The position numbers and the translations under genes were made by a program. A stretch of DNA of 64,000 nucleotides, taken from Salisapilia sapeloensis CBS 127946 (taxonomy: Eukaryota; Protista; Oomycota). Location: assembly GCA_023334545.1 (NCBI GenBank), contig JAADVB010000054.1:24063-88062 (forward strand), in the 5' to 3' direction. Shown here piece after piece: positions 1,926 through 6,203 of this stretch; the stretch's first letter is position 1; each line of letters starts with the position of its first letter. Under the pieces are notes generated by a model. That model ran no database searches. It was not told the origin of the DNA and saw only the letters and a program-made list of their open reading frames with translations.

Positions 1926-2116
1926 CGAACTCAAAACCTGGAGCTGGAATAGAAATGAAGTCGAGTCTAAATATATCTTGGAGTCTATCTAGTAGCTCTA
2001 GCAACTAACGCATCCATGATTCGTACTTTCGTATCTTTATTTCTTCATGTTAAGTCTTGAAACAAATGACCTAGCTTTGTACAGCAGTCCTACGACGTGG
2101 CTAAGCTAGACCTCTC

Positions 2117-3286
2117 TCATGCAAAGGACGGCGAACGAGTCTTCTTGCGAGTCAATGTCTTGTCTGTGACCGTCCAGTTGCCCATGAGACATAGGTAGTC
2201 TCCTTCAAATGTCGTGCGTGTGTACCCTCCTTTCCGCTTGTACGAGATATGCTCATCAATGGCAAGAATGTCATTCGAAAACAAATCGTTCTTCTCATTC
2301 TCGAGCGCATGACGATCAGCGTACACACTGACCGTGTATCGAGATGGACGGAAGCATCGCAAAACATTTTTCAAAAGAGATTCGTAGCGTCGAAGCCTAG
2401 CATTCGTCTCGAAACTGACATAGCTACAGTGACTCTCCGGTGTGATGTGGATCGTGTAGTATGCGTCGAATAAGATGCCGTTCATCGAGTATCCACAAGG
2501 GTCAAAGGCAAAGTCATCCAGGATAGCACCAGGGACGAGGTCGCGGATGCCACTCTTGATGGTCATCTGACGAGAGGTTAGGCCCGGGTTTTGTTCCTTG
2601 GAAAACTGTTCCGACACACTCGGGTGCATATCCTGCATCAGAACGTGCAGCGTCGATTCGTCCGCTGGGCCTCGCTTTATCGCAGGCATTCCGAGCGGAA
2701 GCATCGAAGGCGATTCATGGCTTTCGCTGTCCCAGACGTAGAGGTACCAGTGGTCACGGTTCAATGGTCCAAGGACGTGGGCTGAACCATCCGGAAAGAA
2801 GGAATTCAAGTAACCCACTTCCGTTTCGAAGGACGTGTGTGGGAACTCTTGGCCTTCCGGGAAGGTGTAGTTCTTCCTACTGTAGCTCACCCATTCAATG
2901 GACATGCCGAGAGACTTGGCATACTCTTGGATGAACGGAATTGTCTTGAGTAACGTCGTCGTACCGCACGTCTTTATCACGACCTTGTGTGCGTAGACGA
3001 AGAGACTGGATTCCGACAGGACATACGCGTCGATGTGAGCATTCTCCACTTTCGACAGGATCGTGCACTGAGCAGCATCTAGCATGGCATCGATATCTTC
3101 TCGTCCGACAGCTCGGAAACCGAGTTCATGACCGACACCGCGCTTAAAGTCGATTTCAAGGTTCTTTTCCGGCCCTTCAAAGCTCGTGAGCACGGACGTC
3201 GTATCGGACGCTTCGGACTCTGTCGAAAAGTTGTCTTCATCCGAGACAGGAGGCAGTGTAATAGCTCCTGGGAATTTATTCACCAT
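2117..3286 (-). CDS. SAMDC: S-adenosylmethionine decarboxylase proenzyme (AdoMetDC), 389 aa, intronless
   Basis: Family motifs FEGPEKNLE, YVLSE|SSLFV (autocleavage site that generates the pyruvoyl group), IKTCGTT, FDPCGYSMNG and TIHITPE. Start context aagATGg. Confidence 0.97.
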   Translation of the reverse strand: MVNKFPGAITLPPVSDEDNFSTESEASDTTSVLTSFEGPEKNLEIDFKRGVGHELGFRAVGREDIDAMLDAAQCTILSKVENAHIDAYVLSESSLFVYAHKVVIKTCGTTTLLKTIPFIQEYAKSLGMSIEWVSYSRKNYTFPEGQEFPHTSFETEVGYLNSFFPDGSAHVLGPLNRDHWYLYVWDSESHESPSMLPLGMPAIKRGPADESTLHVLMQDMHPSVSEQFSKEQNPGLTSRQMTIKSGIRDLVPGAILDDFAFDPCGYSMNGILFDAYYTIHITPESHCSYVSFETNARLRRYESLLKNVLRCFRPSRYTVSVYADRHALENEKNDLFSNDILAIDEHISYKRKGGYTRTTFEGDYLCLMGNWTVTDKTLTRKKTRSPSFA

Positions 3287-3304
3287 CTTGCGTCTAGTCG
3301 AGTG

Positions 3305-3412
3305 TTAGGCTGGGTCGTCGCAAGCGCCAATATAGAAAAAGCCAGTGAAGATCGTAGTCTGGTCAACGATGTCGTCGGTTGCGGAGTCCCAGACAAGTAG
3401 TGCCAGCGGCAT
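3305..3412 (-). promoter_or_regulatory. 35-codon upstream ORF in the SAMDC 5' leader (MPLALLVWDSATDDIVDQTTIFTGFFYIGACDDPA*)
   Basis: ATG at 3412 and TAA at 3307-3305, ending 18 nt before the SAMDC ATG. It is the only minus-strand ATG between 3687 and 3287. All six Asp codons are GAC. A regulatory role is inferred from known AdoMetDC uORFs. Confidence 0.75.
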
Positions 3413-3549
3413 GAACGAGGAAACAGAAAAGCGGCTAGTACGCCGAGGTACGTGAACAAAAGCTGAGGCTCGGATGGCTTTCAGCTAATGGGATGCTAGT
3501 ACGAGCACAATGCAATTATTCGACAGCCAACAAAAAGGAACAGCCGAGA

Positions 3550-3640
3550 TAAAGACAAATGCTCTAGGATCTACAAGGACAGACAAAAAATCCAAAGTAG
3601 AAGGATTCGAGTGATTGGTAGGCCGAAAGTATCGAAGTGA
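3550..3640 (-). promoter_or_regulatory. Putative SAMDC core promoter (CCAAT box plus Inr/FPR-like elements)
   Basis: CCAAT on the minus strand at 3618-3614. Inr/FPR-like TCACTTCGATACTTTC near 3640-3625 and GCATTTGTCTTT near 3560. Both candidates lie upstream of the uORF ATG. Confidence 0.4.
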
Positions 3641-3773
3641 GACGAATTTCTAGATTTCAAGATTTGTCCTGTTGTGGCTTTTGCCACCATGCAAATTTGA
3701 CTGGACTTTCGTATACCGTGACAGCTGGATCTTCAAGCGTCATCATCTTATTCCGAAGGGTTGTGAACAGTCA

Positions 3774-5057
3774 CTACTTGGCAGCGATTGCGGTTGGATC
3801 GAGCGGGAGGCAATGGATGCTCTCAGTCGTGTCTTCTCCACGCTGGTCGTGGTTGATGAAATGCGGATGGTCACATACGGCTGGTGTCGATAGTTTTAAC
3901 GTGTAATCACAAGTCTGACCTTCTTTCACGGATAAAATGTGCTGCGTCGACCCGCCTGGACTGCAGTAGTAGTACACGGTAGTTTTACGTTGGGTGACGA
4001 CGTCGAATTCTCTGCACGGAGTACCTTTTGTATACACTTCAACAAAAGCCGGTCTGGAAACGTCGTGCGTGGCGTCAATGTGTTCCATCACCAAGGCTGC
4101 TCCATTGGCCTCCATCTGCGTATTCTTTTGCTGGTCGAACGTCCCGAGGTTATAGTCTGTTACGATACGCCCATTTCCGTTGCGATGGTATTGTCGGACG
4201 CCTTGACCGATACAGAACTCGTACGTCCACCATCCGTCATTCCGTTTCGAGCAGACATGGGCATCTGCTAATGGTTTTAAGAGAGAACGTACGGGGAAGA
4301 GCGTGTGATCCTTTAATCCAGCAAATTTGGCATCACAAAAGACATGGGAGGTTACAAGGAATGCTGAAATGGATCTTGTTCCATCCATTTCAACGGCAGC
4401 AACGGCATTGTCCGATTGCACGTCACTGCACATGAATTGAACACGAATGTGGTGGTCATCTTCGACAAACGTTTGGGTAAAGAGAGGCCTAGAAAGGCTC
4501 TCAAGTCTACTTTTGATCGTAGGATCGATGAACTCGTTGTAACTTACAGCGGTCTCGATGCCATCGGATGTGAATTTTCCGAGAGAATGGACGGTGTGGC
4601 TGGATGGTTGCTTGCTGCCTACACCAGAGACAGCACTGGAGCCGTAGTTGTACGGCTTAAGATTGATCTTTCGAAGTAACATAGTCGGACAGACCTCGTA
4701 TACCCAATTACCTTGGACATCAGCGTACTGCACACACCTCGGCATGATTTTACCGACGGCCGTACGTGCAAACGAGACAAACGCACGGTCCTCTTCTTCC
4801 TGCAGCTTCTTTGTTCGAGCTTCCTCTGATGACATACTATCTTCCTCGGACTGTATGGACGGAAAGAAGCATTCAAACTGCTGTCCAGACGCGAGCGTCA
4901 TGATTTCAGGCTGCAATTCACCCCAATTCGGCGGCTGCACGAAGCTCTCGCGATCAGGGTGCATCTCCACGACATACGAGAGGTCATTCCCACTTAAAGC
5001 ATGTACATACGAAGCTCCAGCGACGAGCAAAGCGGCATAACGTAGTACATGCATCAT
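3774..5057 (-). CDS. OS-9/erlectin (XTP3-B)-like ER lectin with MRH domain(s)
   Basis: Signal peptide MMHVLRYAALLVAGASYVHA. MRH motif WWTYEFCIGQGVRQYH...Y.KGTPC...RKT.V.Y.C...VKEGQTCDY, plus a degenerate N-terminal MRH (NWVYEVC). Start set to the ATG at 5057. Confidence 0.85.
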   Translation of the reverse strand: MMHVLRYAALLVAGASYVHALSGNDLSYVVEMHPDRESFVQPPNWGELQPEIMTLASGQQFECFFPSIQSEEDSMSSEEARTKKLQEEEDRAFVSFARTAVGKIMPRCVQYADVQGNWVYEVCPTMLLRKINLKPYNYGSSAVSGVGSKQPSSHTVHSLGKFTSDGIETAVSYNEFIDPTIKSRLESLSRPLFTQTFVEDDHHIRVQFMCSDVQSDNAVAAVEMDGTRSISAFLVTSHVFCDAKFAGLKDHTLFPVRSLLKPLADAHVCSKRNDGWWTYEFCIGQGVRQYHRNGNGRIVTDYNLGTFDQQKNTQMEANGAALVMEHIDATHDVSRPAFVEVYTKGTPCREFDVVTQRKTTVYYYCSPGGSTQHILSVKEGQTCDYTLKLSTPAVCDHPHFINHDQRGEDTTESIHCLPLDPTAIAAK

Positions 5058-5141
5058 CCTCGGCTTCCGCGTTTCGAAACGTGTATTGGTGTAGATTTGC
5101 AAGACATTAACTTCAATTACAAATGTGCATTTAGAAACAAA

Positions 5142-6203
5142 ATGAATTGGATCGTGATCGTGGCTGTGGCGAGTGCTGCTGTATCTGCGACTGCAGCAGT
5201 AGTACTAGCACGAAATGTAGCTAGGCATAGACGTAGCGATGTACTATGCCAAGTCCCCCTTTCAACGTACTTGAGATTTGTCTTGGCGACTAAATTGCAA
5301 GCCTTCGTGATTCATCTCTCGGGCGTAGCGAGTGAGTGGGAGCATTTGCCTCCTGTCACTCGACTTTCACCTGAAGTTGTTCGTGTCATGGGACATAACC
5401 CTGGAAGAATGACTTTACGCGGTACGAACACGTACCTCATCGGAACTGGATCCACTCGTTTGCTCATTGACGCTGGCGACGGGAACGATGCTTTCATCTC
5501 GTCACTCCAGCAAGCAGTCAAGGCCGAAGGCGTGACGGAGATCTCGGACTTGCTCCTTACCCACAGCCATCTTGACCATATCGGTGGCATCTTGCGTATC
5601 AAGGAGATGTACCCTGCCATGCGTATTTGGAAGTGCTTCCCAGGACAAGAGCTTTCGAACGCTATCAAGGTGTCTTCATCGGATTGTCAGGCTCTAGGTG
5701 TCCAAGAGGTGGTCGACGGACAAGAATTTACCGCCCAAGGAGCTCATCTGAAAGCTGTTTACACGCCAGGACATTGTGTGGATCACATGTGCTTCCTCTT
5801 TGGCTCTTACCTCTTCTCTGGCGACTGCGTTCTTGGCTATGGCAGTGCTGTCTTTGACTCGCTACATGACCTGATGGCGTCTTTGAGAAAGCTACTGGAG
5901 TATAAACCGACAGTCGTGTATCCAGGACATGGTCCTGTGGTATCTGATGCCCAGAGCAAGGTACAAGAATACCTCTCTCATCGAGATGAGCGAGAGCAGC
6001 AGATCTTGACAGCATTGGATCAATCGATTGGAAAGACTGTCGACCGGATTGTACAAGACGTGTATGGTGATTTGAATTGGTTACTCCGCATCGGTGCGAA
6101 ACGCAGTGTTCGACAGCATTTGGATAAATTGCAAGTGGAGAAGCGAGTGGCACGAACGGAAGCAAGTATGTTTTCGAACAGCAAATATCACTTGATTATA
6201 TAA
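5142..6203 (+). CDS. LACTB2: LACTB2-like metallo-beta-lactamase-fold hydrolase with a hydrophobic N-terminus
   Basis: NPGRMTLRGTNTYLIG, THSHLDHIGG (HxHxDH), TPGHCVDH, SGDCVLG and PGHGP. Likely start MNWIVIVAV at 5142. Confidence 0.88.
   Translation: MNWIVIVAVASAAVSATAAVVLARNVARHRRSDVLCQVPLSTYLRFVLATKLQAFVIHLSGVASEWEHLPPVTRLSPEVVRVMGHNPGRMTLRGTNTYLIGTGSTRLLIDAGDGNDAFISSLQQAVKAEGVTEISDLLLTHSHLDHIGGILRIKEMYPAMRIWKCFPGQELSNAIKVSSSDCQALGVQEVVDGQEFTAQGAHLKAVYTPGHCVDHMCFLFGSYLFSGDCVLGYGSAVFDSLHDLMASLRKLLEYKPTVVYPGHGPVVSDAQSKVQEYLSHRDEREQQILTALDQSIGKTVDRIVQDVYGDLNWLLRIGAKRSVRQHLDKLQVEKRVARTEASMFSNSKYHLII

Follow-up and report, generated by a model that had tools for sequence, protein, structure and literature searches.

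In the window analysed here (a stretch of 64,000 nucleotides of Salisapilia sapeloensis CBS 127946, contig JAADVB010000054.1, to which coordinates refer unless another locus is named), the SAMDC proenzyme is encoded on the minus strand at 2117..3286 (389 amino acids; PF01536, E 1e-105). It starts from an ATG at 3286 in the context caagATGg, and its processing-site motif LSESS is visible in the translation. Directly ahead of it, also on the minus strand, the ORF call gave an upstream open reading frame (uORF; 3305..3412) of 35 codons before a TAA stop, encoding the peptide MPLALLVWDSATDDIVDQTTIFTGFFYIGACDDPA. The ATG of the uORF (3412..3410) stands in the weak context gttcATGc (3409..3416), and its stop codon (3307..3305) opens a conserved 3' context, TAA-CAC-tcGACTAg (3292..3307). 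Codons 13-35 (DDIVDQTTIFTGFFYIGACDDPA; 3308..3376) form a conserved core, as delimited by dN/dS and codon comparison, and the spacer between the uORF stop and the SAMDC AUG (3287..3304) is 18 nt long, in frame and open. On the minus strand the uORF ATG is the only ATG between 3689 and 3287, and all six Asp codons in the uORF are GAC. In these respects (a 35-codon uORF whose TAA lies 18 nt before the SAMDC start, its sole AUG ahead of the main start, a weak upstream and a strong main start context, and the uniform choice of Asp codon) the sequence bore out the initial annotation of this DNA. The SAMDC 3' UTR (2020..2116, minus strand) was placed from the ends of RNA contigs at 2020-2048, and the upstream neighbour on the same strand is a gene for an OS-9-like protein with a PRKCSH domain (3774..5102; PF07915 and PF13015).

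Transcription of the leader was assessed from assembled RNA contigs rather than from reads. Four RNA runs of one study contained 90-99% of the words sampled from the window stretch, and the contigs of the same-species runs X1, X2 and X4 each amounted to ~15 Mb in ~18,000 pieces. Because the breaks between these contigs fell in intergenic gaps (1996-2019, 3628-3711 (in X4) and 5067-5145), the three data sets were taken to be transcript assemblies and not genomic DNA. SAMDC was recovered from run X4 on a contig spanning 2020..3627 with a word depth of 171, and the OS-9-like gene on a contig of its own (3712..4825) with a word depth of 27; in run X5, from a relative that was ~96% identical, the corresponding contig covered 2036..3593 and then continued into Illumina adapter. 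According to the RNA contigs the SAMDC leader is at least 341 nt long (about 340-350 nt), unspliced, and includes the uORF. No splice joints were seen in the leader across the RNA contigs, which covered uORF and CDS without a break, so that removal of the segment by splicing, an outcome that the initial annotation had regarded as fatal to its proposal, did not occur in these transcripts. Contig and ATG scan together make the uORF AUG the first AUG of the SAMDC transcript. The leader part 5' of the uORF (3413..3626, minus strand), which lies inside the high-depth SAMDC contig, contains no ATG, and its nucleotides were not conserved between genera in the leader alignment.

The approximate 5' end of the SAMDC mRNA (3627..3643, minus strand) was placed from the start of the X4 contig and an initiator-like CTCACTTC at 3641..3634, with its A at 3638; the orthologous locus of another oomycete (L001) has GCTCATTTTCAAATTG ~460 nt before the SAMDC start. 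We take CTCACTTC to resemble the oomycete initiator (Inr) consensus. In two of the three same-species runs (X1 and X2) the SAMDC contig extended into the upstream OS-9-like gene, and the transcriptional start site (TSS) is thus bracketed, between 3627 and about 3711, rather than fixed. A minor TSS downstream of the uORF start might exist beside the main one. Across 3628-3711 the OS-9-like gene and SAMDC were bridged by a single contig in X1 and X2 and split in X4; the bridging contigs could reflect either an upstream 3' UTR overlapping the SAMDC promoter and TSS or some transcriptional readthrough. The OS-9-like (PRKCSH/MRH domain) gene also lies upstream of SAMDC on the same strand in Phytophthora sojae (L002:1-331), and this micro-synteny, conserved between the window and P. 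sojae, was not seen at L001. On the far side of the OS-9-like gene, the RNA contigs broke at 5067-5145, between this gene and a divergent metallo-beta-lactamase-like gene, and this stretch (5058-5141) is consistent with a very short bidirectional promoter.

The SAMDC protein was 61-72% identical to Peronosporomycete enzymes (those of Globisporangium, Pythium, Lagenidium, Phytophthora, Peronospora and Albugo) and ~50% identical to those of Saprolegniales, its best database relatives all being oomycete. The DNA upstream of five oomycete SAMDC orthologues was compared (L001, P. sojae, Albugo, Saprolegnia and Aphanomyces), and a uORF with the same peptide end was found in all five. The peptides were MLLLVDTISLISSDDIVDATNIFTGFFYIGACDEPA (L001), MLLVDPLFASCDDIVDPTTIFTGFFYIGACDEPA (P. 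sojae), ...KYIVDRRSIFTGFFYVGACDEPA (Albugo candida), ...TLFENYQVDSSIIYTGFFYIGACDEPA (Saprolegnia diclina) and ...TLFGNYLVDSSIIYTGFFYVGACDTPA (Aphanomyces euteiches), and the core [IV]VDxxxI[FY]TGFFY[IV]GACD[DET]PA-stop was common to all sampled oomycetes. An HMM built from oomycete uORFs scored the window uORF at 66 bits. Out of 5.8 billion predicted proteins, a profile search returned 13 tiny 'genes', comprising 12 oomycete peptides (one identical to the L001 peptide, and 11 further) and one uORF from Pedinella; five of the 13 (four oomycete and that of Pedinella) lay on contigs of exactly the same sizes as SAMDC-bearing contigs.

Pairwise comparison of the 23-codon core gave dN values of 0.04-0.29 and dS values from 0.37 to more than 2 or too saturated to compute; dN/dS was about 0.04-0.3 with saturated synonymous sites. 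Differences were concentrated at third codon positions (12 of 15, 10 of 11 and 15 of 22, each P<=1e-3), the third-position excess reaching P values of 1e-4 to 3e-2 per pair. Thirteen of the last 15 codons varied in nucleotides among the six oomycetes (the window included) and three varied in amino acid (F/Y, I/V and D/E/T). In the nucleotide alignment of the leaders, the sole conserved block consisted of the 3' two-thirds of the uORF plus ~12 nt past its stop. Given the low dN/dS and the silent variation in 13 of the 15 terminal codons, the selected object is the peptide with its stop, and not an RNA motif. The N-terminal 8-28 residues were variable in length and sequence; purifying selection was concentrated C-terminally and the position of the stop was fixed, as in class I conserved-peptide uORFs (CPuORFs). 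The uORF is under peptide-level purifying selection far beyond chance. The initial annotation had proposed examining orthologous leaders for a conserved peptide with dN/dS below 1, with emphasis on the C-terminus, and the comparison answered on both counts, the conserved part being C-terminal and ending in Pro-Ala-stop.

Several irregularities were noted among the individual leaders. In the Albugo candida assembly GCA_040437565.1 the identical uORF occurred twice (L003:1077-1188 and L003:1366-1476), flanking a run of N shortly ahead of SAMDC; probably only one uORF is real, and the doubling arose as an artefact of the scaffold gap. The Aphanomyces uORF (L005:1323-1478) has three in-frame AUGs giving 51, 50 and 42 codons, of which only the third yields the 42-codon length of Saprolegnia and has a weak context (tgtATGc). 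The 136-nt spacer of P. sojae (L002:1365-1500) contained tandem CAAGACT repeats, and an in-frame ATG was present in this species 9 nt before the annotated SAMDC start.

Outside oomycetes, SAMDC transcript contigs of ochrophytes carried, shortly ahead of the main AUG, a uORF close in length to that of oomycetes. Its peptide was MRTRTSLGELEVDDIIDSSFMHLQFLYIAVDCDPS in the raphidophyte Chattonella subsalsa, MRTRTLLGELEVDDIIDTSFMQAHLLFVDLDCEPS in a second raphidophyte, Heterosigma akashiwo, MLTLTSLFELEVDDIISGMPGGPSAANVFAPLEPS in a brown alga (Nemacystus/Cladosiphon cluster, L012) and MLFENLESDSRLFKTGKILDSRLIYTGEHEEAKILEVA in the dictyochophyte Pedinella. Oomycete and ochrophyte peptides had in common the motifs DDI[IV]D, F[FL]YI and C[DE](x)P[AS]-stop, and LFEN...VDS..IYTG was common to the uORFs of Pedinella and Saprolegniales. 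The window uORF conforms to the resulting stramenopile pattern, (L-F-E-x-x)-V-D-[DS]-[IS]-I...[DE]-P-[AS]-stop directly before SAMDC, with a weak upstream AUG (uAUG) and a stop codon followed by CA. Searched against 3662 non-self six-frame segments from the window and the ochrophyte loci, an HMM made from oomycete peptides alone ranked Chattonella first and Pedinella second. Shuffle tests (2000 shuffles per peptide) gave empirical p values of 0.0015 for Chattonella, 0.007 for Heterosigma, 0.024 for the brown alga and <0.0005 for Pedinella, each of them modest taken singly. Taken jointly, and with the uORF standing at an identical place ahead of SAMDC each time, the p values are most simply read as common descent, in which case the element would predate the split between oomycetes and ochrophytes. 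The initial annotation had suggested an oomycete-specific peptide, and this part of its proposal gave way to the relatives found before SAMDC in Chattonella, Heterosigma, the brown alga and Pedinella. The peptides end in Pro-Ala-stop in oomycetes, in Pro-Ser-stop in raphidophytes and the brown alga, and in Val-Ala-stop in Pedinella, whose uORF keeps the N-terminal half of the motif and ends ...LEVA-stop without a Pro. A search of 2.5 kb of genomic sequence ahead of the annotated SAMDC start revealed no family member in Ectocarpus (L006) or Tribonema (L007), where a leader exon may lie further upstream. An Ectocarpus ORF ending ACKQPS-stop was considered as a family member and rejected, as it received no support from the brown-alga transcript L012.

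Ten stramenopile leaders with readable DNA, six from oomycetes (the window included) and four from ochrophytes, were compared for features of design beyond the peptide itself. Position -3 of the uAUG was a pyrimidine in 9 of 10 leaders and position +4 a C in 9 of 10, with GTTCATGC/GTTAATGC at the uAUG common to the window, L001, P. sojae, Albugo and the brown alga; position -3 of the main AUG was a purine in 9 of 10. The length of the uORF was constant within clades and ranged overall from 34 to 42 codons: Peronosporomycetes, raphidophytes and the brown alga had 34-36, Pedinella 38 and Saprolegnia 42. The penultimate residue was Pro in nine of the ten uORFs (Pro34 in the window) and in all 12 oomycete tiny-gene peptides. 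All ten uORF stops, whether TAA, TAG or TGA, were followed by CA, a context found after none of the 19 long ORFs in the window, where the CA dinucleotide has a frequency of 7%. Among termination contexts in eukaryotes, a C at +4 ranks as the poorest, and the classical example of a leaky one is stop-CAR. The spacer from the uORF stop to the main AUG ranged from 11 to 136 nt, and its frame was not conserved, being 0 in five of the ten leaders and open in four, about the level of chance. A GACTAC-like block lay 5-12 nt past the uORF stop in most of the six oomycetes (3292-3304 in the window), L001 retaining only CTAC and Albugo having no such block, and the remaining spacer was not conserved; this block could be mRNA inside the entry channel of a stalled ribosome. 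The conserved start context, stop context, length and penultimate Pro point to leaky scanning past the uORF combined with a termination stall that depends on the nascent peptide.

Sequence comparison set the peptide apart from the known SAMDC uORFs. Plant leader peptides were recovered from the database with a plant peptide as bait, and only the returned sequences, all with PF08132, were used; these ended YSNC[AV][RK][KR]PS. The window peptide gave no match to PF08132 or any other Pfam family (E<=0.01), nor did nine stramenopile uORFs match PF08132 or, in any meaningful way, another family (E<=10), and profile-profile comparison with 18 angiosperm leader peptides detected no similarity (hhalign probability 0.2-0.3%). 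An exhaustive HMMER search of 1.84 billion representative proteins with the stramenopile profile returned family members and brought up no plant or algal peptide; the sole other match, the repeat protein P0152, was taken as chance. No match to the uORF peptide was found in a PDB sequence search, and a metagenome scan with the oomycete core pattern gave 0 matches. The 120 metagenome loci matching an ELEVDDII pattern were discarded, all being chance matches inside unrelated ORFs. That the peptide resembles neither known uORF, as first proposed, is thus upheld by the missing PF08132 match and by the contrast with the six-residue MAGDIS.

The plant S-uORF (PF08132, CPuORF homology group 3, Arabidopsis AMD1) is like the stramenopile element in being a peptide-conserved uORF before the same enzyme with conservation at the C-terminus, and both end in Cys-x(2-3)-Pro-small residue-stop. 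It differs in length (48-55 codons in plants versus 34-42) and in its tail, which is basic (C[AV][RK][KR]PS) rather than acidic (CD[DE]PA), and the window leader, having no AUG 5' of the uORF, lacks the overlapping upstream 'tiny' uORF of plants. Since the likeness is confined to position, C-terminal conservation and ending, while tail charge and length differ, the uORF was not filed under PF08132. The Arabidopsis AMD1 S-uORF and the mammalian MAGDIS uORF both show spermidine-dependent stalling at termination that depends on the peptide sequence (PMC7038982), and plant CPuORFs of class I, with a conserved C-terminus and a fixed stop, often stall at termination (PMC9305500). MAGDIS has the same target gene, a poorly recognised start and a polyamine-dependent termination stall, the first two being shared with the window uORF; it comprises six codons 14 nt from the cap and contains no Pro, whereas the window uORF has 35 codons of unrelated sequence and a start that lies no closer than 216 nt to the 5' end of the contig. 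The upstream conserved coding region (uCC) of antizyme inhibitor and ODC homologues provides a further parallel, with a weak upstream start on which ribosomes queue, a conserved C-terminal pause site containing Pro, a place in the polyamine pathway and a length by which the pause may be spaced from the start, but it uses a near-cognate start and an elongation pause at PPW in place of an AUG start and a Pro-Ala-stop end.

A penultimate Pro is reported as near-universal in the AdoMetDC uORFs of many eukaryotes, diatoms included, by Ivanov, Atkins and Michael 2010 (PMC2811004), who do not name oomycetes. The window uORF shares with this class both its location, in an AdoMetDC leader and on one unspliced piece of RNA with the enzyme, and the penultimate Pro, and transcript contigs of other species also carried uORF and SAMDC together. 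Diatoms are ochrophytes and so group with relatives of the oomycete peptide, and the diatom uORF of that study is likely a member of the stramenopile family.

On this evidence we consider it reasonably probable that the uORF is a cis-acting conserved-peptide brake on SAMDC translation, with a stall that high polyamine levels probably stabilise. We infer that the uORF is translated and that ribosomes stall at its termination. The weak uAUG, as the first in the leader, would engage part of the scanning 40S subunits, the remainder leaking past it to the strong SAMDC AUG; leaky scanning would be the main route to that AUG, since reinitiation is unlikely after 35 codons and a spacer as short as 11-24 nt. 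Translation of the uORF would yield a 35-residue peptide. With the stop in the A site, its last ~22 residues (IVDxTxIFTGFFYIGACD[DE]PA) would occupy the exit tunnel, reaching from the peptidyl-transferase centre as far as the constriction. The peptide, its penultimate Pro and preceding acidic residues, and the poor stop-CA context would together slow release. The stalled ribosome would obstruct the scanning subunits that follow and so lower SAMDC synthesis, and it may also queue subunits onto the weak uAUG or trigger decay of the mRNA; that the conserved uORF length serves to position such a queue on the uAUG is speculation. High spermidine or spermine would probably stabilise the stall, creating negative feedback on polyamine synthesis. 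By analogy with other AdoMetDC uORFs, polyamines are probably the effector; the plant and mammalian mechanism is not transferable by homology, because the peptides have no detectable sequence similarity.

The choice of effector is where the nearest alternative departs from the polyamine-responsive brake. The uORF could act as a sequence-dependent brake that is constitutive or that senses something other than polyamines, such as SAM, decarboxylated SAM, methylthioadenosine or, via eIF5A, the status of translation. Anatomical evidence of the kind given above fits any arrest-type uORF and is silent on the effector, and the sequence of the peptide shows no relation to that of either SAMDC peptide known to respond to polyamines. 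Its penultimate Pro and acidic residues, however, fit an eIF5A- or polyamine-sensitive termination. Moreover, all AdoMetDC uORFs tested so far have been polyamine-responsive (PMC2811004, PMC7038982), and a brake of the constitutive or otherwise tuned kind is in our view unlikely, although it deserves real weight.

That purifying selection on the peptide is strong, and that it has a hydrophobic or aromatic core (IFTGFFYIGAC), would speak for a free micropeptide acting in trans, with the shared transcript as its only link to SAMDC. Against this, the position directly before SAMDC has been kept from oomycetes to ochrophytes, the weak start is conserved, and conservation of the peptide stops exactly at a stop codon whose context is conserved too. 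A conserved weak start, a fixed stop and a conserved stop context are expected of a cis-acting element and not of an efficiently made protein, and the Pfam, HMMER and PDB sequence searches produced no structural or family match, so that the micropeptide appears improbable. More improbable still is programmed readthrough of the uORF stop, fusing uORF to SAMDC in an N-terminally extended enzyme. The window genome permits such a fusion, its spacer being short, in frame and stop-free, and the invariant stop-CA is prone to readthrough, but frame and openness of the spacer were near chance level across the ten leaders and P. sojae, L001, Saprolegnia, Aphanomyces and Chattonella were out of frame, which rules the fusion out as a conserved function. 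An RNA element (a structure or a protein-binding site) that is open by chance deserves next to no credence, as this reading, despite the conserved nucleotides past the stop in oomycetes, is already contradicted by the third-position bias, by terminal codons that vary while their amino acids are kept, and by ochrophyte relatives with the same peptide motifs and not the same nucleotides.

The uORF apparently has not yet been reported for oomycetes: no mention of a SAMDC uORF from an oomycete or any other stramenopile, and none of the peptide words, was found in the full-text literature, mostly outside subscription journals. Conceptually the element comes as no surprise, since many groups of eukaryotes are known to have AdoMetDC uORFs. 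SAMDC sets the rate of spermidine and spermine synthesis, and its uORF is the standard example of a nascent peptide that senses a small metabolite in the ribosome; what the stramenopile leaders add is a peptide family with a sequence of its own, whose conservation extends from Saprolegnia to Phytophthora and whose members can still be recognised in brown algae and raphidophytes. As a broader and more tentative proposal, which we regard as possible but short of probable, the family could be an ancient, stramenopile-wide set of SAMDC arrest peptides that arose before oomycetes and ochrophytes diverged and would read polyamine status at termination through a fixed design of weak AUG, ~35 codons, aromatic tunnel segment, acidic-Pro-Ala/Ser end and invariant stop-CA. 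Its conserved length would set up a queue of ribosomes, with feedback on how well the weak uAUG is recognised. If true, it would constitute a third, independently shaped and sequence-defined class of polyamine-sensing nascent peptide, and a tractable one, with natural variants in Pedinella (no Pro) and Saprolegniales (42 codons). The family also offers comparative material on which features (tunnel segment, Pro at -2, stop-CA context) render termination sensitive to polyamines, and a candidate metabolite-responsive leader for oomycete and algal expression tools. Oomycete genome annotations miss the uORF or mislabel it as a hypothetical protein. In public annotation, P0149 (Phytophthora cinnamomi IUM83_03126), an 'uncharacterized protein' of 85 residues, is the uORF extended upstream, and P0150, annotated as 'uncharacterized/hypothetical protein', is the uORF extended upstream to 64 residues.
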